Positions 5,831 through 54,800 are shown, counted from the first letter of the stretch. The stretch is 64,000 bases of DNA from Octopus bimaculoides (GCF_001194135.2 NC_069000.1:44963818-45027817); one strand, 5' to 3'. The notes: a model not told the origin generated them from the letters alone. A program made the numbers and translations.

Positions 5831-6030
5831 CGATTATAATAGGACACAGACAATCAATATTTCCTGTTTAAAATACATTCAAACAACATAACTTATTCTA
5901 CAAAAGATTGATTACACAATGGTGATACACATGTAATGCCTTACTTTTGTAACATTGCATGAAAGCTCAATGAGAAACGATGACAAAGAAGGTTACATTA
6001 GAGAACACAAAATGATGACGTTATACTTAC

Positions 6031-6076
6031 ATCTACTTTTTTACAGTCAGGGTCCCAGCCTAAGTGTTTAATATGT
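6031..6076 (-). CDS. WASP: WASP exon 7 (second half of CRIB)
   Basis: Acceptor cttcttgtcag|, donor GAT|GTAAGT; 46 nt, phase 2 to 0; HIKHLGWDPDCKKVD completes CRIB IGQPTNFRHIKHLGWDP. Confidence 0.95.
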
Positions 6077-6384
6077 CTGACAAGAAGAGAAAGAGAAGAA
6101 AATTACATGTGGAAGCCATAAAAGATACAAACCAGGACAGCATCCAATAGACACCCATCCTCCTCCTCCTCCTCTTCCAATTCTGTCACAAAATTATAAA
6201 GTAATCAATCCAATATTAAACAAAAGTCAACAGGAAAAAAAAACTCAAAAAACAACAACAAAAAAACTAATTAAAATGAAATATTTCCCACTTTGCAACT
6301 GTGTAGTTTTGGGTTCAGTCCCTTGAACAAGGTGATTGGCTTGCAAAAACAAAAACAAGAAAAAGAAATAATGCAAAACCTTAC

Positions 6385-6484
6385 CGGAAGTTGGTAGGTT
6401 GCCCAATGTCTTGTTTTGTTAGGCGGGACTTTTTCTTCTCTTTCTTTAATGTTGACTTCTTCAGTGTACCATGTTGCGTAGAGC
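6385..6484 (-). CDS. WASP: WASP exon 6 (basic region and first half of CRIB)
   Basis: Acceptor atctttcag|, donor CCG|GTAAGG; 100 nt, phase 1 to 2; (G)STQHGTLKKSTLKKEKKKSRLTKQDIGQPTNF(R). Confidence 0.95.
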
Positions 6485-6504
6485 CTGAAAGATAATAAAC
6501 AGAC

Positions 6505-6890: not shown

Positions 6891-8100
6891 AAGATTTATA
6901 TATATAGAGGGTGGGGCAGAGAGGACAGATGCTTTAAAAATGGCTATTACTAGCCCCAGCATTTCCACCCATACTAATTGGTCATTGGGCAACAGTTGAA
7001 ACAATGGCACTATGAACAGCGGCTTAACTTTGTATGTTTTAGATCTTAATTATAAAAATATGAAACCATTATTCTATGTTAATTTAGTTAATTTAGATTT
7101 AATTTAGTTAATTTAGATCTAAGCATCATGTAAAATAGGTAATAAGTATATGCCAATCGGTATTGTTAATTATGTAAGGTATTAAATGTACTGATATTTA
7201 ATATCATAAGCTATATTCGATTTTGTTTAATCATATGTAAAAGCACAAGAGGAGAGAGAAATATGTAAGTGGGAAATAGTTTTGAAGTGTAGAGAAGATA
7301 CGTAAATAAATGGGCACATTTCAGTTATATACATACATATATACACATATATTAATAATTATCAAACAAATGTATGTATGTTTAAAGGGTATTAAATTGT
7401 TACTAAAGATATGTAAAAGTAAGTTATTAAAGTGAGGGTTGTACTCATTCCAATGTGTTTCAAAGATACATAAATAAATGAACACATATTTCATATTTCA
7501 TATATATATATTATACACACACACATTAGTGCTGTTGACACCGCCAGATTGAATGGTACTGCAAAGGTGTTGAAACCATAATGATATCCGTATGGCAGCT
7601 GATGATGGAGGTATGTTGTATTGTTGGTATGACTGTGTAATAGTATTATAACACATCCTTTTGATATATACATACATACACACACACACTTATATATGTA
7701 TATATGGAGGTCTATATATTTGTGTGTGTGTGTGTGTGTATGTACACATATGCACATATATATACATGTAAATAATCTAATATGTATATCTGTTTATGCA
7801 CATAGAGGATGTGAGGAGTTTTTGTGAAGATGACTCAGATTAACAGGTATGTGTCCCAAGTGCTCAAATAGGTGTGCCACCAAAATTCCAGTTTGAACAG
7901 TGGCAGGAGTTGTGGTTGTGCAATTGTCTTGTTCAAAAAACAGCTAGTGGTGGTTTCCCTTTTAGTTGGAAGATATAAGTTAAAGTAACGAAGAAAGGAG
8001 GTAAAAAAATTGAGTCAAGCCAGAACAAGGATGTTTGATTTCATTCGATTCAATCTAAAAAATCTTGCTACATAACGAATGGTAAATATGTGTTTATATT

Positions 8101-8140
<40 letters not shown>

Positions 8141-8277
8141 TATATATAAATAATGTAATATATATGACAGGAGCAGATGAGCCAGAAGGCTCTTCCGAGT
8201 TGTATCTCTGTGAGAGAAAGAATGTATATATGATGAGCCTAGATAACAAAAATATCTTGCTAAAAAAAGGCCCTTAC

Positions 8278-8382
8278 CTCCAGTATCCGGGGTTTTCTGT
8301 AAAGGTGCCTTATTCAAGGTGATGTTATTCTGGGTCGTGTTGCTTTGCTGGTTCCGTTGCACATTCTGCTGGTTCCTCCGTT
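8278..8382 (-). CDS. WASP: WASP exon 5 (Q/N-rich linker)
   Basis: Acceptor atcgcacag|, donor GAG|GTAAGG; 105 nt, phase 1 to 1; (E)RRNQQNVQRNQQSNTTQNNITLNKAPLQKTPDTG; phases fit both neighbouring exons. Confidence 0.85.
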
Positions 8383-8648
8383 CTGTGCGATAAGTAATAC
8401 AAGACAACAACTTCAATAATGAACGTTTGTAAGACATATCTATATATTTCACTCACCAGTGGCTATTGCTAATGCTTATGTTACACAACCACAGGTCAAT
8501 TTTTAACGTCCTTCTTCCATGCTGGCATTGACTGGTCAGTTTGACAAGATCCAGTTGGCTGGAAAATGGTGTCATGCTTCAATGCCTGCATTATATTTAT
8601 CATCATCATCATCATACATATGTAACATGTGCTTTCCTTATGCTTATT

Positions 8649-9127
8649 CACCTTCTCCTCGACTTACAACCAAGTTCCGTTCTGACTGACTAGTTGTAAG
8701 TCGGTCTGGTTGTATGTCGGATTTATATTTTTCAAACCGTTTTCATTCAAATGGGTTGTAAAAATATAAAACTCAAAAATCTAATCCATAATTTTTGTAC
8801 CTAATGTGAAAAATACATAAGTATTTTATTGTACTGTAAACAAAGATACAATCTAAAATGAATGAAAAAATTAATACAAACGAAATTCCGCATATACACA
8901 AAAAAAAAAAAAAATTGTTCCTGTGCAAAAAGTGGAATTGAAAATAAATCTTTAATCTTCAGTCATGTTCTTGGATTGAGGTAGACGGATTTTCGAGAAA
9001 TATTGTGAACGATAAGAACGCACAGCATCTTGAATGATACGTTCAGACTTTGCAATGCGTTTAACTTTTTGTGGTCGCAAATGCAGAGGGCCATAAAGTT
9101 GCATAGGTTGTAAGTCGAGAGAAGGTG
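8649..9127 (-). mobile_element. Tigger/pogo-like non-autonomous DNA transposon
   Basis: About 24-bp TIRs (caccttctcctcgacttacaacc / ggttgtaagtcgagagaaggtg), TA on the right; internal RIAKSERIIQDAVRSYRSQYFSK resembles a Tigger transposase C-terminus. Confidence 0.7.
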
Positions 9128-9482
9128 TATACAAATGCTTTCCTTATGCCTATATAGTTGTTTGCACATCTTGACATCTTGTATATACACATGTGAGTGC
9201 GTATATATATATACAAGTACTGTTCCATTCAATAGTTCACCAGCATTAGCAACGGCTTAGAAAGGTGCTTAAAATTGGGAAATGGATTTCACTGAATTTA
9301 ACGTGAAACATCCGTTCAAAACTAGTCACCAAGTACCTTTGCAAGACAACGCCCCGCCTCACTCAACTGAGATGGGGGAGTAGTATGGAGGGGGCGTGGT
9401 TTTCTGCCAGTTGAGAGATTTAAAAAAACAGAGAAGTTAGAGTGCCTTTCTGAGATCTTCTTTGAACGATCTCCTCACTTAC

Positions 9483-9582
9483 CTTCTTTCTTCTTCTGCC
9501 TCTCCAGGATTTTACTACGGACGACCTGTACAAACTTGGCTGCTTCATCTTCATTTGCAAAGTTGATACCAGCCTGATAAAA
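9483..9582 (-). CDS. WASP: WASP exon 4 (end of WH1)
   Basis: Acceptor tctttgcag|, donor AAG|GTAAGT; 100 nt; FYQAGINFANEDEAAKFVQVVRSKILERQKKKE (QAGLNFA.E.EA..F motif); ends in phase 1. Confidence 0.97.
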
Positions 9583-10205
9583 CTGCAAAGACATAAAAGA
9601 CAAGAGACAACGTCAAGTTTTTCCTACGGTTTTCTGTCTGTACGTCCCTATTTCCCTCACTCCATGTCTCTACAGACAATACAAAACAGAATATACAAAC
9701 AGTAAAAAAAAAAAAAAGACTAAAAGAGCAGACATGATTATGTGGTTAAGAAGCTCATTGTGCAACCATATGGTCTCAGGTTCAGTCCTACTGCATGGTA
9801 CCTTGCACAAGTGTCTTCTGACTGGGGATTGACTTATATCCAGCCCTTAATCATAAAAAGGCAGAGCCCCTCAGTTTCATATATGGAGGGAAGATTCTGG
9901 AAGGTTTATCAACCCCACAAGAATTAACCCATTGATATTCAGATTATTTCTCTGTCAAATGTAATACTCATTAATTCACATTGATTTAAATTAATCATGT
10001 ATTATCTCATAGCCTTGAGCTTTCAATAACGCGATTGTTTAATTTTAGAATGACATTGTAGGGTAGGCGTGAGAAGCTGGATGTGGCCGGTTCAAACATA
10101 AAACAAGTAACATTTTGGTCAGATATGGTCAGTTTAAATGCTAAAGGGTTACACTGGACCTTGTCCAGGCTTCAGATTGAAACCCCATCTCACAGTCAAG
10201 CTTAC

Positions 10206-10292
10206 CTCAGCTTCAAATGTGTGGAAGAACGAACGAGGGCTCTTGTATTTCAGTTGGTTGTACATCTCTTGTTCCCATAGCAACTGCTGCCG
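10206..10292 (-). CDS. WASP: WASP exon 3 (WH1 domain)
   Basis: Acceptor ctttcttcag|, donor GAG|GTAAGC; 87 nt; RQQLLWEQEMYNQLKYKSPRSFFHTFEAE (LLWEQE.Y and P..FFHTF hallmarks). Confidence 0.97.
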
Positions 10293-10847
10293 CTGAAGAA
10301 AGAAAGACAAAGGATTCAATGAGGGTGGGTGGAAAGAAATATTAAAAAAAAACAACATTTAATTAAAAAGATATTTTAAATCCTATTTAAAAAAAAATAA
10401 ATGCTGGCAGCACATAAAAAGCAATGTTTGAGCATTGGGCCTGATGGAGGCAGGGGTAGGTTACTGACACTTCTGGTGATATACCATGATGTGTAGACCT
10501 GTCAAGCCAAGTGAGACTGTAGTCATGGCTGATATCAGTGTCAGGTCAATGGCACGTAAAAAAACTCCAACTACACTCTTGGAGTGGTTGGTGTTAGGAA
10601 GGGCATCCAGCTGTAGAAACCTTGCCAAATCAGATCGGAACCTGGAGCAGCTCTCCGGCTTAACCAGTTTTCAGTCAAACCGTCCAACCCATGCCAGCAT
10701 GTATGATGATGATGTAATAAAAACTGAAGGAGAATCAAGGATTTTGAGAATCAAGTGGTAATCATGGGAGACACTCCAGCTGAAGAATTAGCTATCAAGT
10801 GACACAGAAATTAAATTACAATTTAATTGAAAATCTAGGTGTGGCTG

Positions 10848-11215: not shown

Positions 11216-12308
11216 CTTTTACTCTCCAAATCTTTTCAGGAGAGACAAGAAATTCTAAAGACACATTTCCAACAGATCTAATTCTATGGAATCCATATCA
11301 ACATTCAGGAGGGAAAGAGGGAGCTGGTGGAGGAGGAGATTTAGGATTACTTTTATCCCCTTCCAAATGTTGGGAATGAAAGCAACAAGTGAGTCAGGAG
11401 TTGGCTGGATTATACAGATGAGGCCATGTTGCTTGTACTAGGAAGTGATTAGATGCTATTATAAGTGCTGTTATTCCTGGTTAAAAGATGTACTCTCTTT
11501 TTTTTGGGGGGTTTTTCCCGAAATTTTGTTTGTATCTTTTTATGAAGTTATCTCAATGTTAAGTGTAATGGCATTGACTTTTTTTACAGAATATATTAAA
11601 TGTAATGTGAGTTAGGTGGCATGTGAAAAACAAGTCAGAAAAAAGCCCCAGAAAAGATAGTCTTTCACACACACACACACACACATTCTGATACTAACCA
11701 CGTGTGTGCATGTACATATGCACATGTATCCATATGCATATATGCATGTATATATATATACACACACATCCATATGTACACATATACATACATGCATACA
11801 CATGTACATATATATGCATTTATATATGTGTGTATATACACACACACATTTGAAAGAATATCAGTAACAATATGAACAATATTTCAAAACATTCATTCCT
11901 ACAGCTGTTTCAATAACTCATTACATTTTAAAGATAATCTTACTTATATAATTCTAGCACACAAGAATCACATTTTCGGGGGGGGGGGGGATCACAGATG
12001 AATTATAGATTTCAAATCAACTCTTATGTAGGTTGAAAATTCAAGGAGAAAAAAAAATGAATAAAAAAAAAGAGGAAATAAAACAGGAATATTGAGATGA
12101 AAAATAGGAAGAAAGCCTGAAGGTGGAAGAAGATGGCAGAAGACAGATGGAAAATGGCTCAACATGGAAGAAGATACAAGAAAACATGATGGTGAGGTAT
12201 AAAGGACAGTGAGAACATATTGAAAAAAAAAAACAACAAAAAAACAGACAATAAAGTACGATGTTGGTGAGTGTAATTAATAGAAGCATTCCTTCTTCCC
12301 CCTCTTAC

Positions 12309-13610
12309 CTCATCCATGGCATAAACCTGTGCAAGGGACTTTAAATAATCAATCAGAATGGGATCAAACTCATATGATTGATGCTCTTCATTCTCCATAC
12401 TGGAATCATCTGTTCCATAATAATTACCATTGTCCAAAGAGCTGTTGTAATTACGGTAATTATTATTCTCCTCCTCAAAAGTTTCCATAGAGTCTGGGTT
12501 TGTTTGATAGGATTCGTAGCTGAGGGGGGCCGAGCTGTGGTGGTGGCCACCAGTGGTGTTAGAACCAAACCCTTCATACTGACCATACCCATGAGATTTC
12601 TCATGAAACGCATCTGTTTTGCTGGATTCCTGATAAGTACCAGTCATTTTATACGGGTCATATTTGTTATGGGAAGGGCTTGCTAGGTAGATAGCCTTGC
12701 TCCACATTTCACGAGGATTAAAATTCCTATCGGGTATTTTTGTAGTTGAAGCTGTTTGGTGGTGATGGTCATGGTGATGAGGATGTTGGGGGTCATCATG
12801 GTGATGGTCGTGGTGGCTTGGCTGATAAACAGAATTGGTTGAGTCATAAGAATTATGGACATTGTACAATGCAATATTTCTATAATAACTACGAGCATGC
12901 TCAAGGGCCTTTGACCACCGGTCTTGAGGTTTTGCCATGTCATATTGGACCAACTGTGGCATGTGATTGTATTCATTATTATGATACACCGTACCATTGT
13001 GGTAAGAATGGGTAGATTCCAAATGGTACTGAGAATTTTCATATTCTGAAGAAATATGGTTAGAATGGTTAGTTAGATTACTGGAATCCGCTTTTTGGTA
13101 ACCGTTAGATATTTTGTCTTGATAAAAATGGTCATTCTGTGAATGTTTAGCTCTGTATGTCTGGGAATGAGAGTCATATGGTACTTGGACGTCTCCAGAT
13201 GTTTGTCTGTAAACAGTCTGGTCAAAAGATTGCTGGCTATTAAACTTCTTTGAACTGGACAACTGACTGTGTGTGTACTGAGTGGAAGTGTGGTAGGGCT
13301 GTTGGTCAGAAGTCTGTTGGAAGTCAACTTGGTCAAGGGAATTATCTTGACCGTAAGAATACACAGATTCAGCATGTTTGTAAGTGTGATGTTGTGTGCT
13401 ATAGTCGGATTGAGAACTGGAATGGTGTCCATTGTATTGATAATCTTGGATAGAAGACGGAGTCTGGTTTTCGTGTGCTTGTGACGTCCATTGGGTACCA
13501 TAGTCTAAGTATTCTTCCGATGGATCTTTCTCACACAAACCGTACGGATCATACTTCCTGTTTCCATTGAACAGTCTGTATGAGTAACGGTACGGTTTCG
13601 TCGCAGCCAT
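12309..13610 (-). CDS. 434-codon His/Tyr/Ser/Gln/Asn-rich exon in WASP intron 2; putative alternative first coding exon (or nested gene)
   Basis: Uninterrupted non-microsatellite ORF with ATG directly after an in-frame TAA. It ends ...LKSLAQVYAMDE at the donor GAG|GTAAGA (intron starts 12308), phase 0, which matches WASP exon 3. The ORF-track extension past 12309 is intron-like T-rich sequence. Confidence 0.75.
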
Positions 13611-16600
13611 TTAGCCGAAGAAATTGGTGCGGAAGGAAGAGTTATTGGGAAATGTTAGAATACAGCAGTTTTTTTTGTTCTTGATTTTTACTAATAGACA
13701 ATCCATCTATTGTAACTATAAACTTGATATTGAGACAGCTACAGTAATTTGTGTGGATTAACAGCATATAATGAAGGGGGGGGATATGGTTCACAGGATG
13801 ATGGTGGTGGTGGGAGAAGAGAATGCTGTTGCAATACAGATTAGGATTACCAATAGATAATCATTAAAAAGGATTACTGCATCAAGGCATGTTCATTCTT
13901 CACCGAGTGGAACCCCTCCCCAACCTCTAGTGGATTAATGGAATCTAGAAAGACTGCTGTCTAGTTGTGGCTCTGTGCTTTATTACTGAGGACATGGAGT
14001 CACGTGTTGGTCATATCTTTTGCTGAATCACATTGTCTCAGGTTAATATGCAGCCATGCAAGGGATTCTGGGAAATAAGTATGACAACAACAGGATGACC
14101 AAAGAGAGACGCAGTGGGACTGAACCCAGAACCATGTGGTTGGGAAGCTAGTCTCTTATCACACAGCCATGCTTTTCCTTGTCATCACACATAACTAAGA
14201 CCTCACACAGACTGTCATCACTTGCAGGCGTTAACACCAATATATAATAAAGCCAGAGTCAATTTTACCGAATTTCTCAAGAAGACTTGGTTGCATTGAA
14301 AAATTAATTGAAGAACATAGGCAGCCTAGTTGCAAGAAATATATAATTACGAAAGTTCATTAACAAAGGTGGAGTGTGCCGTTTAATTAATCAAACACGC
14401 AGTAAACATTACATACTACTATATTCGAGGGTAGGTGGTAAAGAGAAGGGGAAATCAGTTCGTTATCTCTCAGAATGAGTAGCTAATTAATATTTCCAGT
14501 AAGTAGTAGTACACAAATGCAACAGGGGGATTAGCAATGAAAAATAGCCTGGTGATGGTGGCGGCAGTAGAGATGGAGGTTGTATTGGCGATAGAGCTGA
14601 TATTAAAAAAAAAAAAAAAAAAAATGACTGCTTGAAAAACAGAACAAAAACACAAAAGAATGGAAAAAAACTATGTGAGTTACAAAAAAAAATTTTGAAA
14701 AAAAATATCTTGAATTTTTTTTCTGTAATTCAGTCTGAAGTGGGTGGGAAGAATTTGGTTTAGAGGTAAAGACAGATTTTCCCAAACTTAGAGCCTTAAC
14801 ATTTCAGGTTCAAATCCTCCTTTGGCCATATTTCTTAGCAAAATGCAGGGCCTGTGTATTTTAATTAATTTTGTAAACAATCAAGAACGAATGTCTGGTA
14901 GAATCGGTTGAGCATCAAAACAAAATGCCGGCATGTATTTAGTCACATGTAACAACGCCTAACATTATATTGTATGTTGGAAATCAGCCAAGGTCAACCT
15001 TGTTGTTTATCCTCTTGAGGTCGATAAAAAAAAAAAAGAGTAGCAGAGAAGTATTGCAGATGATGAAATATTCCCATAATGCACCTGAGACATGAATGGG
15101 AATATCAAATGATTAAGACTAAGGCTTAAAGGATGGGTAACGGCTTACTGAAAGAACTCTGACATTATCAATCTGGTGTTTGGAACAGGAGTAGAATATG
15201 AAGTACAAAGTTTATCAATGATATTCGTAGCTATTATTCTAGTCATCATTTAACACCCATCTTCCATGCTGTTTTTATATGGACAGTTTAACAGGATCTG
15301 ACAAAACAGAGGGCAGTGTTGAGGTCTAATGTCTGCTTTGGTACAGTTTCTACTGCAGGATGACCATCCAAATGCCAGCCATTCTATACAATGTACTAGG
15401 TGTTTTGTTTTTTTTGTGACACCAACAAGAGTGAGGTCACCAAATAACTTACAAGACCTCTTGACTTGAGTGTGGGCATGGTATTGAGAGAAGGGATTTT
15501 GTACCAGGTATTGAGAGGCGAAAGTATGATAGAGAGACAAGAACAGGTGTTTTGATGTAAAGGAGACATATGGCTACCTTAGCTGGAAAAAGGGAAATGG
15601 TAGAGACAAGGTGTTAGGGCAAAACCCGCAAGGTACAAGAAAGTATATAAAGACAGAAAATGGACAGAGAATCAAGGATGTCTGGATGGTACAACAAGCA
15701 GATGTGCTTGTAGAGCATGCTGTGTACTGTCCTACAATTGCTCAAGCTCAACACACACATAACCATTTTAATGTACACTTTTCCATGCCTGCATGAGTCA
15801 GATGATAACCCTATTGAATCAGATTTTTGTACAACCAGATGCTTTTCCTGTTGGCAACTCTTACTCGTTTTCAAACAATGCAATATTTCCCCTGGCCCAT
15901 CAAGCAACAAACGGCCCCGATGTGCTTTCACAGAGGCTTGAAAACAAACAATATTATCTGTATAAACAGTGACTACTAAAGGCTGCTGGAAGCCTGGGCA
16001 GATATACAACCAGGGGGAGTACAGGACTGGTGCGAACCTGGATAGTTATAGGACTAACTGAAGTTGAAGCTAGTAGGAATCTGGGTAGATGTAAAATAAA
16101 CTGGGGTACAGGTAGGAATGAGCCAGCCTGGGTGGGTGGGTGGATATATAAGTAGCTGGGTTAGAGATTGGTATGAGATTAGGTGGAGTGAGCCTGGGTA
16201 GATGTTCATATAGAGACTGGAGTAGAGACAGTTGCAGAAGCAAGCATTGAGGGAGAGAGAGAGAGAGAGAGAGAGGGGAAATGGTATTGTTTCTGAGTCA
16301 GTGATTGCAGCGTGGTGATGGATGTGAGTGAATGTCTGCTACCAGACAATCAAACAGAACAACCAGGAGGCTTGGATGGAAAAAACCCCTGCAAAACTAA
16401 GCAGTTTATCGTACAATATTGCAGTTGGTCAGCCAATTTCCATCCGGGTGGTGTTGGGTTGGTGAGCAGGTAAATGTTTATGCCAACACAAACCAACTCT
16501 TCACAAAATAACAAGGTTAATAAAATAATGAAGCTGTGTTTAATTAACACTAAGCTTTTTTTTATGGAGTGTAATGGTGGTGGTGGTTGTGAAGGTAGTG

Positions 16601-18562: not shown

Positions 18563-18703
18563 CTGCACATCGTATATCCGAAAGTAGTAAGAACGTCTGC
18601 TGTTGTCTTTGACAAAGCAGACAGCTCCAGAATGTTTCTTGTTCCATTGCTGTATGTTGGGTCGTTCTGCAAGAAACAGCTGGCAAAGGGCTGATGCTAA
18701 AGT
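18563..18703 (-). CDS. WASP: WASP exon 2 (WH1 domain)
   Basis: Acceptor ttttgcag|, donor CAG|GTTTGT; 141 nt; TLASALCQLFLAERPNIQQWNKKHSGAVCFVKDNSRRSYYFRIYDVQ contains the WH1 W..HxGxVCFVKDN.xRSY motif. Confidence 0.96.
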
Positions 18704-21310: not shown

Positions 21311-22556
21311 ATTATCTCATTCCAGGGTGAAAAACTAGAGGTAGTCGATAGCTTCCGCTATCTGGGTGACCAAGTTAGTAGTGGGGGTGGGTGCGCTGAA
21401 AGTGTAGCTGCTAGAATAAGAATAGCCTGGCCAAAGTTTAGAGAGCTCTTACCCCTGCTGGCGACAAAGGGACTCTCACTCAGAGTAAAAGGCAGACTGT
21501 ATGACGCATGCGTACGAACAACCATGCTACATGGCAGTGAAACATGGGCTGTAACTGCTGAGGACATACGTAAGCTCGCAAGGAATGAAGCCAGTATGCT
21601 CCGTTGGATGTGTAATGTCAATGTGAATACCCGTCAGAGTGTAAGTATCTTGAGAGAAAAGCTGAACATTAGAAGCATNNNNNNNNNNNNNNNNNNNNNN
21701 NNNNNNNNNNNNNNNNNNNNNNNNNNNNNNNNNNNNNNNNNNNNNNNNNNNNNNNNNNNNNNNNNNNNNNNNNNNNNNNNNNNNNNNNNNNNNNNNNNNN
21801 NNNNNNNNNNNNNNNNNNNNNNNNNNNNNNNNNNNNNNNNNNNNNNNNNNNNNNNNNNNNNNNNNNNNNNNNNNNNNNNNNNNNNNNNNNNNNNNNNNNN
21901 NNNNNNNNNNNNNNNNNNNNNNNNNNNNNNNNNNNNNNNNNNNNNNNNNNNNNNNNNNNNNNNNNNNNNNNNNNNNNNNNNNNNNNNNNNNNNNNNNNNN
22001 NNNNNNNNNNNNNNNNNNNNNNNNNNNNNNNNNNNNNNNNNNNNNNNNNNNNNNNNNNNNNNNNNNNNNNNNNNNNNNNNNNNNNNNNNNNNNNNNNNNN
22101 NNNNNNNNNNNNNNNNNNNNNNNNNNNNNNNNNNNNNNNNNNNNNNNNNNNNNNNNNNNNNNNNNNNNNNNNNNNNNNNNNNNNNNNNNNNNNNNNNNNN
22201 NNNNNNNNNNNNNNNNNNNNNNNNNNNNNNNNNNNNNNNNNNNNNNNNNNNNNNNNNNNNNNNNNNNNNNNNNNNNNNNNNNNNNNNNNNNNNNNNNNNN
22301 NNNNNNNNNNNNNNNNNNNNNNNNNNNNNNNNNNNNNNNNNNNNNNNNNNNNNNNNNNNNNNNNNNNNNNNNNNNNNNNNNNNNNNNNNNNNNNNNNNNN
22401 NNNNNNNNNNNNNNNNNNNNNNNNGAAACTCTGCCAAATCAGACTGGAGCCTGGTGTTGCCATCCGGTTTCACCAGTCCTCAGTCAAATCGTCCAACCCA
22501 TGCTAGCATGGAAAGCGGACGTTAAACGATGATGATGATGATGATGATGATGATGA
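21311..22556 (+). mobile_element. 5'-truncated RTE-clade LINE spanning an assembly gap
   Basis: LEVVDSFRYLGDQVSSGGG...RIRIAW.KFREL...LHGSETWAV...LRWMC; N gap 21679-22424; 3' tail ...ccaacccatgctagcatggaaagcggacgttaaac(gat)n. Confidence 0.9.
21679..22424. other. Assembly gap (N run); other gaps at about 18974-18983, 30017-30051, 31555-31564, 36805-36814, 48354-48381, 52001-52270
   Basis: N characters. Confidence 1.
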
Positions 22557-25500: not shown

Positions 25501-28500
25501 ATATATATATATATATCACTCACACATAGACACATACATGCAGTCAATAAAATACATATTTTTAAAGACACAAACACATGTATAAACACACAGAGAAGTT
25601 GGTGTTTAGTTTGTTTACACTATTTACAATGTAAACAGATTCCAGAGTAATGTTTATCTAATGAGGTGTAGAGGGTGAATGATGAACAACAAAAGACAAC
25701 CCTTCAGGGGCACCACCACTGCCTAAATCCTTCCCTAATAAACCAGATTCAATTACTTGCTGAAACCAGTTCACTTCACACCACAGATCTTAATACTATT
25801 ATGGAACGGCATGAATGTCATACATTCTTATTACTGTAGTCCTGTATTAGTTTGTGACCTCAAAGCTAATTAAGAATATATTTTATTTTTACCTTTTAGA
25901 GGTCAAAGGTCAGAGTGTACGACCCATTTTCAAGATCTTCTGACAAAGGCAGGAGCAAAGGAGTAAGATAGCTTCTAATTAGAGATCTGGCTTGTAGGTT
26001 TGCCATGGAATGAACTCTGCCAAAGTCATTGAAGAATTCAAGAATCAGTGGTGGTGGTGGTGTATTGGATTTAGTTTCTCACCAAAGAACTGGGGACAGA
26101 TTCTAAGACAGGCTTCCACAGTTTCTGTGTGCCATCTCTTTTTGTTTTTCACTTGTAGTTGCCATCTACCAAATCAACTTACGAACCTTTGGTTGGCTCC
26201 AAGGCAATAGTCACACAGTGGGACTGAACCTGGAACCATGTGGTTGCAAAATAAAGCTACTTACCACACAGCCATGCCTGCACCTTGCTCTAAGATACAT
26301 ACAAACATTAAAATTATTAAAAAATTCGTCTACAAAGCTCATATTATCTAGTTGGTACAAGGATCGTACACAGCTTTTGAAGCAATTGACTGAAGGGGTG
26401 GGGGTGGGGTTGGAGGTCTGCATCAGTTTACTTGAGTACCTGCAGGTGCTGTAAATGGTATGGCCATGTTTTAGCTAGTCACCATCGTAGTTTTAACATC
26501 TACTTCTCTACATTTGCATGGCTCAGAAGGAGTTCATTGGGTCAGATTTTCTACAGCTATAATGTTTTTCCTGTTGCCAACTTTTACCTATTTCCAAGTA
26601 AAAATATTTCCCAGTGGCCAGACATGTTTTCGTGGAAGACTGAAAACAAAGATCATTGCCTGGATGATGGTGACGCTCGTTTACAACTATCACATGATGT
26701 CAAAATCAGGAGACACTGACATCCACCCACCACACACATTCTTTTACTTGTTTCAGTCATTTTACTGTGGTCATGCTGGAGCACCACCTTAAAGGGTTTT
26801 AGTCAAAGAAATCAACCCTGGGACTTATTCTTTGTAAACCTAGTACATATTCTATCAGTCTCTCTCGCCAAACCGCTACGTTACAGGGACGTAAACACAC
26901 CAACATAGGTTGTCAAGGCAGCTCCATTTAATTGAACAATGCAATCATTACATCAATTTATTGGAAGAAAATACTGGTTACAAAGTGTCGCATAGTGGGA
27001 CTGAACCCTAATCCACAAGCAATATTCTTACCCCCCCCCCACACACACACCTGCACATATACCTTCTTGCACAATGTCGCAAAAGGAGCTCTGAGAAAAT
27101 GAGAACAATTTCTGTCGAAGCATTTATTTATTTATTTAAGATGACAGATCAAAATCTGTTTCATTTAATGATAAAAAGGGAATTATAAAAATAAAAAAAA
27201 ATTATTAAATCCTACACTGGAGGACAACACTCCTTCCACCACTCTTTCTCATATTATATAAACATGGCTCGGAGAAGCTTTCAGCTTTCTGTCACGAATT
27301 TGTTACTACTACTACTACCGCTTCAACAGCTATAAATTTAGAATTACAAACAGCATCCCTTAGTTCACACTAGTATAAAGAAGAGTTCTTCGTAGACTAT
27401 CAGCACCAATTACCATATCTGTAAATAACATTAAACCATACTATCATCGCCCGAAACCTATTTCTATGCTAAAAAGACGACCACTCGTCGATTTGAACAC
27501 TCGTCAACAGGCTTGAAAGTACTTCCTGCTCCTCGTTCCAATATATAAACCAACCGACTTAACCTGACCAATTTTCTCGTGACACTACGACTCCTGCTAC
27601 AAACTGCCTCATTCATTTCTTCTCTCTCTTTTCTGAATGCCAGTTGTTTATTCATTCAGACAGGAGGAAGGAGGCTCCTTCGTTTCTACTGAAGATGAAA
27701 AAATTCTCAAGCAGGCTATGAGATTTCTACAAGCCGTAAGATTCCATATAATCCTTTAAGGGGAGCTGCGGTGTGTAAGTTACAGCAGGATTATCTGGAA
27801 GCAATTACAGTAAAGAAATCATTTCGTAATAGATCAGGTTACTGAATACTTGAACATGCACATAATGTGTGTGAGCTCCAGGAAAGGCTCTTCTCATTTC
27901 ACAGAAGAAAGCTCCGACCAGATCAACACTCCCTTTGGCGTATCTGTGTCATCATATACGTAAATGGAATCGTTAATGGAACATGCAAAACTTCTAGAGA
28001 ATGATTTAAATTACGTTCACGCCAGGCAAGGAAGAGACCGAGCCCCTTGCGGACGCGACAGACGTCAAAGTATGTCTATCATTGACGACTTTTAGACAAT
28101 CCAAAAGGAAGCAATAAATTACATCAGCTGTCGACCAGAGTAAAGAACGTCAGAGATAGAAACGATAGGATTTCCGTTGATATTTCTACCCCTTCATCCG
28201 GCAACCTTAACTGTACCGTAGAAACTCTCCAATGCCCGACACTTTCTTAATCAACAAGCACTTGTTAAACTATCGTGTTTAAATTTGTAAATTCTATTTC
28301 TATTAAATTATAATCAACCTCCCAGTTAAGCCGTGCGCTTATGTGAGCGCATGTTTTACAACTCATACACAAATGGGAGAAAATTAAATGTACGCACACG
28401 AAGTTTTCAACATGAAATCGAATATTTTTTTTTTAATTAAGGATGGCTAATAACATCCATGCAAAGACAAAATTTACATTGATTAGCTGAAAAACCCCCC

Positions 28501-31936: not shown

Positions 31937-32044
31937 CACACATCCTTTGCCAAGACAACTGAACAGCATGTCATTTTCCTGCGAACTTAATAACAAACAG
32001 CCGACGTTTGTCGCCTTTTTCGACACATTATTGTTTTGACTCAT
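31937..32044 (-). CDS. WASP: WASP/N-WASP homolog, coding exon 1 (start of WH1)
   Basis: ATG at 32044; translates MSQNNNVSKKATNVGCLLLSSQENDMLFSCLGKGCV, resembling N-WASP NVGSLLLTPQENESLFTFLGKKCV; 108 nt, donor GTG|GTAAGT, phase 0. Confidence 0.93.
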
Positions 32045-38898: not shown

Positions 38899-39701
38899 TT
38901 AACTATGGTGTGAATTCCATGACTGTATGTCACTATTCAAATCGACAATTTCCCTGCTTTTAGGATTCTCTTCCTCACTATTTTCAGAACTGTCTTTCAC
39001 ACTATTTTCAGAGCTGTCTTCCAGGAGTCTTTCAGAATTGTCCTCCTCACTTATATCAGAACTGTCCTCAACTTTAATATCAGAACTGTCAACAAGTTTG
39101 TTCTCAAGAATGTTCTCCAAACTATCTTCCAGTCTACTTTCAAAAGTGTCATCTGATTTTCTCTCAGAACTGTCTTCCAATTTGCTTTCAGAGCTATCCT
39201 CCAATATGCTCTCAAAATTGTCCTTCAGTTGACTCTCAAAACTGTCCTCTAACCTGTTCTCAAAACTGTCCTTCAGGTGACTCTCAAAACTGTCCTCTAT
39301 TTGACTCTCAGAACTTTCTTCAAATATTCTTTCAAAACTGTCCTCCATTTGACTCTCAAAACTGTCCTCCATTTGACTCTCAGAACTATCTTCCATTTGA
39401 CTCTCAGAACTATTTTCCATTTGACTCTCAGAACTGTCATCCAATCTGTTCTCAGAACTATCCTCCAGTTGGATATCATTGCTGTTCTCCATTCCAATAT
39501 CAAAACTGTTCATTTTGTCTTCTGTCTGTCTGGAATCCAAAGCATTTCCAATTTTCAAAGACCCATTTTCGTCTTGTTTTGGATCTTCCTCCAAAATTTC
39601 AGTAAGGTTAATGTTTGATATATTGGCGTTTACCAATATTTCAGAAACATTCAAGGTCCAAGGTGCTCCTTGGAATTCTTCAGGACTTATTTTTCCATCT
39701 C
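38899..39701 (-). CDS. EF-hand/acidic-repeat protein, last exon (end of EF-hand 2 and Asp/Glu/Ser-rich 8-aa repeat tail)
   Basis: Acceptor after a pyrimidine tract (catacctag|), phase 1; (G)DGKISPEEFQGAPWTLNVSE... then about 20 x (L/M)EDS(S/F)ESQ-like units (24-bp DNA repeat) to TAA at 38899. Confidence 0.85.
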
Positions 39702-40052
39702 CTAGGTATGACAAAAAAAAAGAAAAGAGAAAAAAATTAATTTTGTTACAATCAAGGGTCACAGCAACATGTAATGTTTTAGTTAAGGGTCACAACAACA
39801 GGATTTTCAATGAATTGATATGTGTGGTTGTGTGATTGAGAAGCTGGCTTCCCAACCATATGGTACCTGGTTCAGTCTCACTACATGGCACCTTGGGCAA
39901 GTGTGTTCTATAGGTGCAGGAGTGGCTGTGTGGTTGAGAAACTTGCTTCTCAGGTTCAATCCCACAGTCCAGCATCTCAGGTGAATATTCTCTACTATAA
40001 CCCCAGGCCAACCAAATCCTGTGAGTGGATTTGATAGGTGGAAAAAGAAGCC

Positions 40053-51830: not shown

Positions 51831-54800
51831 ACAGTAAAACTGAAAAGAATGGAAGCAATTTCGGTCGGTCTGCTGCGAAAGTAGGAACCGAATATGACTC
51901 ACAGAAAGAAGAAAGAAGGAGGAGGAGGAGGAAAAGAAGAGAGAAGAAAATAAGAAAAAAAAGAAAAAGAGACGTGGATGGGGGGAAGAAGGGGAGGGGG
52001 NNNNNNNNNNNNNNNNNNNNNNNNNNNNNNNNNNNNNNNNNNNNNNNNNNNNNNNNNNNNNNNNNNNNNNNNNNNNNNNNNNNNNNNNNNNNNNNNNNNN
52101 NNNNNNNNNNNNNNNNNNNNNNNNNNNNNNNNNNNNNNNNNNNNNNNNNNNNNNNNNNNNNNNNNNNNNNNNNNNNNNNNNNNNNNNNNNNNNNNNNNNN
52201 NNNNNNNNNNNNNNNNNNNNNNNNNNNNNNNNNNNNNNNNNNNNNNNNNNNNNNNNNNNNNNNNNNNNNNNATCATCATCATCATCATCATTATTATTAT
52301 TATTATTTACTTTTTTCCGTATGGTTTGGGCATGGGTATGTGGGATATTTGCGGGTGGGGGGGGGGATATATGGTGTGTGTGCTGTTGGTCTAAGTTCAG
52401 CCCAATATTTTTAATTGTAGTGGTGGTGGTCACAGTGATGGTGTTGGTAGTAGTATTAGTAATGGTAGTTGTGGTGGTGGTAGTGTGATAGTAGTAGTAG
52501 TAGTAGTAAAGGGGATGGTTGTGGTAGTTGTGATTGTAGTAGTAGTAGTAATAGCAACAGTTGCAGTGAGTGATGGTAGTAGTAGTAGTGGTGGTAGTAA
52601 TACACACAAGACTTGTGTGTCTGTGTTCGTCCCTCCACCATCACTTGACAACCGATGTTGGTGTGTTTACGTCCCCGAAACTTAGCGCTTTGGCAAAAAG
52701 AGACCTAAGTCTACAAAGAATAAGTCTTGGTGTCAATTTGTTCAACTAAAAGTGGTGCTCCAGCATGGCTGCAATCAAAATGCCTGAAACAAATAAAAGA
52801 ACATAATATAGCAAATGACAGCTCCTCAAGGTGCCATACAGTGGGACTGAACCTGAAACCATATGGCTGCAAATTGAGTTTCTTAAGTACAAACCCATGC
52901 CTTCGAATATTTACAAAAAATAACACCCCTATCAAAAAAAACAAAAAACAAAAAAAAACAACAACAGAGAACAAAGCGTGAAATGTTTCTTTAATAATTT
53001 ATTATCATTTAAATAAAAAAAAAGAAAGAAACACAACAAAACATCCACAGGTAGTTAGTGTCAATAACAACAACAACATGAATGTTCCTAACAAAAGTGT
53101 GAGATAGGTCGTCATCCAAATATTCTATGTTGAAGTGCTGATATTGCACTCAAGCGGCATCGAATAAAGACCCTCTCTTCTGCATGAAGGGTCATTATGA
53201 TGTCTTGTGTATAAGTTTAGAATCTAGATATGGTGGGAATGGTGAGAGAGAAGAGGTTATTAGATAGGTGTATAGCTATTTGCATACATACACACATATA
53301 TAAATATACATATGTATAGGTATATACACATGTATGTTTATGTGTGTGTGTGTGTGTGAGTATATCAAAGTAGCACAATTTTCATGAAACACTACCTGGT
53401 ATATATGTTTTAAATATTTTTTCAATAATGTTTTTGGTTTAAAAAAAATATTAAACCATTTATATATGAATATATATATATATATATATATACACACAGA
53501 TATATGCACACACATATATATATATATGTATGTGTGTGTGTATATATATACACACACACATACACACATTTCACTCTGGGTAAGATTTGAAAGCACAGCA
53601 CAACCAAATTTTTCAGCAATATGAGAGTATTAAGGATGACTTCTAAGACAGACTCAGAGATTAGAAATCTGGAGGTGGGTGGAGAAACAGCAGACTACAT
53701 CGACCCCCCCACCCCTGTACTTAACAACAAGTATCATATCCCCCCCCCCGGCTGGACAAAACGAGATGTAAACTAAAACAACAAAAAGGAAAAGTTTCAT
53801 TAAAAACAGCAAAATATTGGTTCTGGAAGTGGGTAGGAGGTAGTCAGACGAGTAACCCAACCTCCTCGTTATCAGCTAAGAAACGAAACCTTTCCACCAT
53901 AGAGAGGATTTCACTAACAACATACCTCTGGTGAAATCATTATCATTTTAATATCCCCCTTTCCATGCTTGCTTGGGTCAGGTGGAATCTGTTGAGGCAG
54001 ATTTTCCATGGCTGGATGTCTTTCCTGTCACCAACCCTCACCTGTTTCCTCAGCAAGGTGATATCTCCCCCCCCCCACCTAGGCCTAATGTGTTTTTTGT
54101 GGAAGATTTGAAATGAACAGCATTGCTTTTATGATGATGATGATGATGGTGCTTAATTACAAACATCATCTAATGTCAAGACATGGGTACACATACACAT
54201 GATGGGCTTCTTTCAGTTTCCATTCACAAGGCTCTGGTTGGTCTGGGGCGCATAGTGGGACTGAACCTGTAGCCACATGGCTGGAAAGCAAGCTGCCTAA
54301 ACCACTCAGCCGCGTTTACACTTTCAAGCAATAACTATTTACTAACAAACCTTACAGGATATCTTTACTACAGGGATTAAGGAAATAATACTTGTTCTGT
54401 GACGTGGTTTTCATAGAGATTAAAGATTAAGGATTATTTATGATACGTCATCTCCATCAGTTAATTAACTAACTTGAGTTGAGATTCAAAGTAACAGCAA
54501 CAGTAAATATCTTGGACAACTGTGATAAATAATGGTTTTGGAGGTTTCTCCTGGTTTTGCTGGTTCTGGAAAAAAGACAAAACAAAACAAAACAGATAAA
54601 CATAAATATAAACATTTCATTGCAATAATGATGATGACGATAATGATAATAATAATAATAATAATAATAATGACGATGACGATGATGATGATAATTTCAA
54701 TAGTAAAACTAATTGATGTTGTATATTTTCTGTATAAAATCTCACCCAACACGTGTTTTGCGCAATCACCACACATACAACATATACCTGACGCCAGTCC

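Follow-up and report, generated by a model that had tools for sequence, protein, structure and literature searches.

Introduction

Alternative splice forms are nearly absent from the WASP family, for which a comprehensive survey listed none besides one mutually exclusive exon pair in Aplysia, and no WH1-domain protein was found to have an isoform with a partial domain (Kollmar et al. 2012, PMC3298513). The same survey described WAWH, a WASP without WH1, from amoebae, Apusozoa, and the anole, and judged a reported exon-2-less splice form of neural WASP to be a probable artefact (Kollmar et al. 2012, PMC3298513). In Caenorhabditis elegans, the single WASP locus wsp-1 has two promoters, the products of which differ in N-terminus and expression (bioRxiv 10.1101/2024.09.23.614059; 10.1101/2025.10.27.684948). 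Herein, we examine a WASP/N-WASP-type gene of Octopus bimaculoides in a 64,000-nucleotide (nt) stretch of DNA (GCF_001194135.2 NC_069000.1:44963818-45027817; "the window"), and report that intron 2 of this gene very probably contains a true alternative first exon and the promoter that drives it, the exon providing a new N-terminus in exchange for half of the WH1 domain.

A preliminary description of this DNA had proposed such an exon and stated that no isoform of the kind was recognised among known WASPs. The latter statement does not stand, as RefSeq entry XP_014771603.1 already corresponds to this model: it is identical over 434/434 residues of the open reading frame (ORF), has the same junction (...YAMDE/RQQLLWEQ...), and contains a partial WH1 as well as a PBD (Pfam), differing from the full isoform in that it breaks off where an assembly gap interrupts the proline-rich exon. 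The entry is an automatic prediction carrying a Dictyostelium low-complexity name ("putative uncharacterized protein DDB_G0282499, partial") and no WASP label; literature searches by RefSeq name and by accession found no paper.

Results

An intact reading frame within WASP intron 2

The coding part of the alternative first exon occupies positions 12309..13610 of the window on the minus strand and consists of 434 codons, from the ATG through the last codon, GAG. As had been read in the preliminary description, the 1302-nt ORF (434 sense codons) is intact, with its ATG (13610-13608) directly adjoining an in-frame TAA (13613-13611); it extends up to GAG/GTAAGA, such that 12309 is the last exon base and 12308 the first G of the splice donor (GTAAGA, 12303..12308, minus strand). 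The exon sits in the 8.3-kb intron 2 of WASP, between exon 2 (18703-18563) and exon 3 (10292-10206). The coding sequence of exon 1 (108 nt) plus exon 2 (141 nt) and the 1302-nt ORF both terminate in phase 0, in agreement with the phase originally assigned. Without splicing, another 49 codons would follow before a stop at 12159 is reached, giving 483 aa. The chance expectation for a 434-codon open frame is ~5e-8 per window of such base composition, and this ORF is the longest in the window once those built of assembly-gap Ns are set aside.

In-frame splicing to WASP exon 3

RNA evidence was obtained from Logan assemblies of three O. bimaculoides runs (X1, X2, and X3), from assemblies of other runs, and, for run X24, from raw reads. 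In runs X1, X2, and X3, a single contig each spans the alternative exon from 12309 to 14138, 14126, and 13715, respectively (word depth 300, 140, and 174), and continues past 12309 with a 28-nt overhang, TCTCTTGTTCCCATAGCAACTGCTGCCG, that is the reverse complement of exon 3 bases 10292-10265. Exon 3 begins at 10292, directly after ttcttcag, and its first 28 bases (10292-10265) are CGGCAGCAGTTGCTATGGGAACAAGAGA. Across six runs, every RNA contig departs from the genome at exactly 12309, five of these (X1, X2, X3, X9, and X14) displaying the exon 3 overhang in phase 0; in the same six runs, no contig was found to extend into 12308 and below at comparable depth. The spliced product reads ...LAQVYAMDE/RQQLLWEQEMY..., with SLAQVYAMDERQQLLWEQEMYNQLK as the junction peptide. 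The predicted 12309-to-10292 junction is thus borne out, in frame, by the RNA assemblies of three O. bimaculoides runs, and the direct passage of contigs from 12309 to 10292 also upholds the claim that no further coding exon lies within 12308-10293. At the level of the transcript, the interpretation is confirmed; i.e., the alternative first exon is spliced in frame to exon 3.

The canonical form is present in the same samples. The X1-X3 exon-2 contigs (depth 339/174/170) include the first 28 nt of exon 3 on one side and 96-245 nt of exon 1 on the other, with the exon 3 branch point as their sole break; contigs from these runs end 28 nt into exon 3 because this exon has two predecessors there. 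As a control, the exon-2 contig of X21/X22/X23/X5 (depth 442/173/193/28) is unbroken through exon 3 for at least 255 nt. The fraction of ORF 31-mers present is 0.00 in X21-X23 and 0.30 in X5, the latter without an assembled junction, while X24 raw reads have a depth of ~42 on exon 2 and 0 on the alternative exon (13500-14071 checked). Five runs (the X21, X22, X23, and X5 assemblies and the X24 raw reads) therefore express canonical WASP with little or no alternative exon; in X1-X3, the alternative exon makes up ~45-51% of the exon-2-plus-alternative depth, and is thus about as abundant as canonical exon 2. Use of the alternative exon is sample-specific and near on/off.

Conservation and selection among octopods

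An orthologous ORF is present in a second, more distant octopod (contigs L001-L003, protein P0002); it, too, starts with TAA-ATG, and its donor reads GTAAGC (L001). Protein similarity between the two stops exactly at ...YAMDE, with unrelated sequence beyond, and nucleotide identity to L001 is 88% in the ORF and 74% after it. Over 418 codons aligned with L001, the nonsynonymous (dN) and synonymous (dS) divergences are 0.096 and 0.308, for a dN/dS of 0.31, such that the check for purifying selection (dN/dS<1) suggested in the preliminary description came out in favour of selection. Relative to L001, all 10/10 indels within the ORF are multiples of three, set against flank indels of 1, 2, 11, 15, and 23; differences at codon positions 1/2/3 number 42/34/76, and synonymous sites are changed more often than nonsynonymous ones (Fisher p 3.8e-10). 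Two other Octopus species (organisms C and D, ~94% identical) yield RNA contigs with the same exon 3 overhang at 12309, their within-ORF indels summing to multiples of 3. The 434-codon frame is thereby open in at least four octopus species. Since the ORF, the in-frame indels, and the junction are kept across these species, the alternative exon is, judging from its pattern of substitution, a conserved protein-coding exon under purifying selection.

Near-invariant blocks comprise an N-terminal MAATKPYRYSYR.FNGNRKYDPYGLCEKDPSEEYL, as well as AKPQDRWSKALE.ARSYYR (KPQDRWSKALE.ARSYYR), IPDRNFNPREMWSKAIYLASPSH.KYDPYK (NFNPREMWSKAIYLASPSH.KYDPYK), and YEFDPILIDYLKSLAQVYAMDE; conservation is weaker in the Tyr/His/Ser-rich spacers. 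As a side observation, the +1 frame of the ORF has just 6 stops in both species, against ~50 in the +2 frame, and this paucity is probably a by-product of codon and amino-acid bias.

A separate 5' end and a conserved upstream block

Exon-2 contigs enter exon 1 by 96-255 nt without branching and have exon 3 alone as downstream partner, so that neither exon 1 nor exon 2 is spliced to the alternative exon. Alternative-exon contigs have their 5' ends at 13715 (X3), 13743 (X9), 13750 (X4), 13762 (X14), 14126 (X2), and 14138 (X1), with no upstream joint. At 13715, the X3 contig runs into Illumina adapter, indicating a shared fragment end, and depth in X1 and X2 is zero at 14160-14400. We conclude that there is a proximal start cluster near 13715-13762 plus a weaker or sample-specific distal start near 14140. 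The proposal of a first exon is hence matched by RNA contigs that have their own 5' end and are unjoined to exons 1/2. With respect to the proximal cluster (~13715-13762), the 5' untranslated region (5'UTR) of the alternative first exon covers 13611..13762 (minus strand), some X1 and X2 transcripts reaching to at least 14126-14138.

Within this 5'UTR, an upstream ORF (uORF; 13614-13706, minus strand) begins at an upstream ATG (uATG) at 13706 in good context (A at -3, G at +4) and runs for 31 codons in the main frame, ending in the TAA immediately before the main ATG. The second octopod retains the uATG but has a shorter uORF owing to a 23-nt deletion; transcription starting at 13715 would put the uATG merely 9 nt from the cap. 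Farther upstream, the X1 and X2 contigs break within a 40-mer (…GGTTCTGGGTTCAGTCCCACTGCG) forming the core of a repeat that resembles a tRNA-derived short interspersed nuclear element (tRNA-SINE-like; 14109..14148, minus strand), with a word depth in RNA assemblies of up to ~43,000 and divergent continuations in large number; the L001 alignment, and with it homology to the second octopod, ends at 14109.

A conserved block at 13720..14015 (minus strand) is a candidate promoter/enhancer, containing four TAATCC motifs (5' ends at 13937, 13876, 13849, and 13760), one TAATGATTA (13866), and one CACGTG (14006), all of which are conserved in the second octopod. In 50-column windows, the block is 84-96% identical to L001, whereas the 5'UTR immediately downstream reaches 44-66% and intron sequence beyond the donor 74%; even the coding exon, at 88%, is less conserved than the block. 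As TAATCC occurs at chance across the window (38 found, 36.6 expected), the four copies within 183 bp constitute a local cluster. We infer that this block would act as the promoter of the alternative exon, which, to go by its motif content, might be under the control of K50-homeodomain (or homeodomain/basic helix-loop-helix) factors.

Domains, composition, and relatives of the new N-terminus

The exon swap removes 83 residues, encompassing the N-terminal half of WH1, and introduces 434 new ones. By Pfam, profile positions 1-53 are replaced, in keeping with the half-domain replacement first proposed: the alternative isoform matches WH1 positions 54-110 only of 111 (E 4e-14) and keeps the PBD. 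A complete WH1 fold is not encoded, as the N-terminal strands specified by exons 1-2 are absent.

The ORF product is rich in polar and aromatic residues (S 13.6, Y 10.6, H 9.0, Q 8.3, N 7.6, D 7.4%) and net acidic (56 D+E versus 29 K+R), with 39 His, a cluster of which reads HHDHHHDDPQHPHHHDHHH. Its composition is biased, yet the sequence is not simple (entropy 3.3-3.9 bits per 40 residues), and WSKA and KYDPY each occur twice. The original designation as a low-complexity domain describes the region only in part: most of it is predicted to be disordered, but it has three strongly conserved, helix-like blocks. A prion-like composition fits in part, via the polar/aromatic bias, with disorder coming from a low-confidence AlphaFold model only. 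That AlphaFold2 model of XP_014771603.1 (3-row alignment; mean predicted local distance difference test [pLDDT] 40) is unstructured except for helices at 228-252, 299-310, and 417-450; a complete insect WH1 used as a control (P0003, 2-row alignment) likewise came out unfolded.

For the ORF, no Pfam family (best E 0.075) and no significant PDB relative (best E 0.037) was detected, and a phmmer search of 1.84 billion representative proteins returned two proteins only, both orthologues, and no other homologue. The region thus appears, at the level of sequence, to be restricted to octopods. In these Pfam, PDB, and phmmer searches, there was neither a transposable element (TE) or viral domain match nor any sign of multiple copies; the product is not that of a TE or a virus. 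When the shared part of WASP was used as the query, a single Manduca protein was retrieved, which was uninformative as to other molluscan isoforms. Parts of the ORF product (RWSKALEHARSYYRNIALYNV, MWSKAIYLAS, and LAQVYAMDE) were considered as degenerate copies of the WH1 strands replaced and rejected, as Smith-Waterman alignment to the octopus peptide of exons 1-2 and to an approximate human N-WASP probe did not exceed chance (scores, 28 and 26; means of shuffled sequences, 28.7 and 26.8).

Exons of the host gene and neighbouring features

All WASP exons described here lie on the minus strand. The coding part of canonical exon 1 (MSQNNNVSKKATNVGCLLLSSQENDMLFSCLGKGCV; 31937..32044, from tblastn and sequence) and canonical exon 2 (TLASALCQLFLAERPNIQQWNKKHSGAVCFVKDNSRRSYYFRIYDVQ; 18563..18703, from RNA contigs) are absent from the alternative isoform. 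Exon 3 (RQQLLWEQEMYNQLKYKSPRSFFHTFEAE; 10206..10292) is common to both isoforms, offering the acceptor for exon 2 and for the alternative exon. It is followed by exon 4, encoding the end of WH1 (FYQAGINFANEDEAAKFVQVVRSKILERQKKKE; 9483..9582), for which there are joints in X1-X3 contigs and in 44-78 X24 raw reads as well as support from translation, and by exon 5 (8277..8382, from RNA joints and translation); the downstream joints seen are 9582 to 10206 and 8382 to 9483. The product of canonical exons 1-5 matches Pfam WH1 with an E of 2.1e-33 over profile positions 1-110 of 111. Two further exons, with approximate borders, were located via tblastn: one encoding the basic region and the start of CRIB (…KKKSRLTKQDIGQPTNFR; 6384..6485; P0001 residues 532-565, 100% identity), and a CRIB exon (RHIKHLGWDPDCKKVD; 6025..6081). 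The CRIB/GBD is recognised as PF00786 (P21-Rho-binding domain; E 1e-8) in both isoforms, with the basic stretch KKSTLKKEKKKSR upstream of it, and P0001 has a proline-rich tail.

The remainder of WASP lies beyond window base 1, and downstream exons were found only in the public chromosome record (GCA_001194135.2, CM046620.1; locus L004). There, outside the window, the final exon encodes ADGESDEEDSDDDENLDDDWDD followed by a stop, an acidic, Trp-containing end (...DDDWDD) typical of the "A" of VCA, and the proline-rich exon meets an assembly gap. Runs of N are present at ~21680-22460 and ~51990-52290 of the window and at ~26905-27400 and ~28270-28980 of L004. The two L004 gaps interrupt the proline-rich/VCA-coding part, which accounts for the "partial" status of the RefSeq protein and for WH2 and C motifs not having been found. 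In X2 and X3, unbranched 2399-nt contigs lead on from exon 3 with a depth no lower than that of the two first-exon forms combined, for which reason the alternative isoform probably retains the rest of the WASP protein.

With respect to the surroundings, the intronic repeats at 8000-8250, 10520-10770, and 11654-11770 reach RNA-assembly depths of up to ~237,000 and give rise to numerous spurious "joints" among the tabulated reads; these repeats appear to be either simple repeats or abundant families that are transcribed. A 287-aa ORF at 38899-39762 (minus strand), most of which is a tandem array of ~13 units of 24 nt that code for acidic repeats of the EDSSESQ[M/L] type, has no Pfam match; ~7 kb 5' of WASP exon 1 and on the same strand, it could belong to an adjacent gene as one of its exons. 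Past the 3' end of WASP, outside the window, the next gene encodes an IMP dehydrogenase (Pfam IMPDH/CBS) on the opposite strand (L004 35355-36904).

Discussion

Weighing the explanations

The transcript could in principle be a by-product, in which an intronic (e.g., TE-derived) promoter fires in some samples and makes use of the next WASP acceptor, leaving the ORF untranslated or functionless. The distal end of the long 5'UTR form does abut a SINE-like repeat, there are upstream ATGs in the 5'UTR, and the ORF is lineage-restricted, without homologues elsewhere. Such a by-product would, however, not be expected to keep its frame open in at least four octopus species with in-frame indels only, a dN/dS of 0.31, and a third-position excess, nor to conserve its donor and junction, nor to lie behind a block, upstream of the proximal starts, that is more conserved than the ORF; its abundance, moreover, matches that of the canonical form where it is on. 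We thus consider this explanation very unlikely. A nested independent gene, with its own product (e.g., the 483-aa read-through to 12159), intronic polyadenylation, and only minor splicing to WASP, is scarcely credible. Although the frame stays open for 49 codons beyond the donor, and a 546-aa read-through protein was called on DNA-derived contigs from the second species, RNA contigs of six runs all depart at 12309 (five with the exon 3 overhang), none enters 12308 and below at comparable depth, between-species protein similarity ends at the donor (…YAMDE), and nucleotide identity falls from 88% in the ORF to 74% after it. Both explanations are therefore contradicted by the conservation and splicing data, and none of the outcomes named in the preliminary description as speaking against its proposal (lack of an exon 3 junction, a nested gene, loss of frame in relatives, or a TE/viral match) was encountered.

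A further possibility accepts translation and assigns the product a mainly regulatory or unstable character: the half WH1 would be unfolded, the protein short-lived or a Cdc42/SH3 decoy, and promoter choice would serve to lower canonical WASP. Mammalian WASP without WIP is degraded, and the octopus WH1 remnant covers profile positions 54-110 only. A WH1 lacking its N-terminal strands has been argued to be unable to fold (Kollmar et al. 2012, PMC3298513). Yet purifying selection acts along the whole 434 residues, with several near-invariant blocks, which exceeds the need of an "off" form, and the part of the protein that follows still includes CRIB, the proline-rich region, and the acidic tail; the chance that this explanation is the right one is accordingly slim. 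With considerable confidence, we thus favour a genuine alternative first exon of WASP with its own intronic promoter.

Certain points weigh against this reading or restrict its reach. Support for the isoform is at the RNA and sequence level. The short-read assemblies do not phase the alternative exon with the far 3' end of the gene, and no WH2 or C motifs were seen in L004, where gaps interrupt the VCA-coding part. The on/off contrast is defined by run. Start positions are ends of RNA contigs rather than exact transcription start sites, the distal end of the long 5'UTR form is hidden by the SINE-like repeat, and this long form has many upstream ATGs, with the short form too having the uATG at 13706. 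As the complete-WH1 control also failed, the AlphaFold2 models say nothing on folding or complementation of the remnant WH1, and loss of WIP binding, while a strong inference, draws on what is established for the WH1 fold.

A proposed mechanism

The WH1 domain of WASP/N-WASP binds WIP-family proteins via a surface built from the whole beta-sandwich. Since a WH1 without its N-terminal strands is argued to be unable to fold, the half domain of the alternative isoform would not form a WIP-binding module and the isoform should not bind WIP, resulting in a WIP-independent WASP. With its basic region, CRIB/GBD, and proline-rich region (and probably the remainder) retained, the isoform should stay responsive to Cdc42, PIP2, and SH3 partners; it would still be autoinhibited, be released via CRIB, and act as an Arp2/3 activator. 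The new N-terminus would then set localisation, partners, or self-association, with the conserved blocks serving as docking or oligomerisation motifs. More speculatively, the Tyr/His-rich spacers might add multivalent self-association and thereby raise Arp2/3 activation, and the 39 histidines could confer pH or metal sensitivity. Among WASP-family proteins, an oligomerised VCA is a far stronger activator of Arp2/3, such that even weak self-association would matter. The functional proposals of the preliminary description (loss of WIP binding, prion-like condensation, and metal or pH sensing) are plausible. The most elaborate version of the present proposal, in which an octopod-specific exon under a homeodomain-controlled promoter yields a tissue-specific, WIP-independent Arp2/3 activator with pH/metal-responsive N-terminal self-association or condensation, has a small but appreciable chance of being correct as a whole.

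Significance and comparison with known systems

Alternative first exons are common in general, and this gene model is already in RefSeq; the significance of the locus thus resides in what is swapped, in the strength of expression and conservation, and in the rarity of such forms within the family. Against the near-absence of WASP-family isoforms in the survey, the octopus isoform is a well-expressed, conserved, and sample-specific one with a partial WH1. The locus offers a natural experiment on the need for the WH1-WIP module and on the emergence of a new coding exon and promoter within an intron of an essential cytoskeletal gene, and is a candidate case of tissue-specific actin regulation in cephalopods. 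If true, a pH/metal-responsive isoform would wire actin nucleation to a physicochemical signal undescribed for any WASP. At a practical level, RefSeq entry XP_014771603.1 is misnamed and should be tied to the WASP locus.

The tyrosine-rich, prion-like domains of the FUS type and the His/Tyr-rich proteins of cephalopods (reflectins, beak, and sucker proteins) resemble the octopus region in their content of Tyr (10.6% in the latter), Ser, Gln/Asn, and His. The octopus region differs, however, in having just 3.9% Gly and only 4 [GS]Y[GSQ] motifs, in containing 1.8% Met, 2.5% Arg, and no reflectin-type [MF]D-x5-MD motif, and in being net acidic with conserved, non-repetitive blocks. Pfam, phmmer, and PDB searches detected no sequence similarity of the ORF to any of these proteins.

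Among WASP genes, octopus WASP resembles C. elegans wsp-1 in deriving two isoforms from two start sites; a phmmer homologue search found no sequence relationship between wsp-1 and the octopus exon. WAWH and the alternative octopus isoform would both be WASP-type proteins without a functional WH1, but WAWH proteins are encoded by separate genes and have no WH1 at all, whereas the octopus isoform keeps half. The exon-2-less form of neural WASP would likewise lose the N-terminal WH1 strands; in the octopus, by contrast, the missing half is replaced by 434 conserved residues and there are a dedicated promoter and RNA in several runs and species. Compared with these systems, the octopus case is that of an alternative-promoter isoform in which half a domain is swapped for a lineage-specific, selected, and mostly disordered region.

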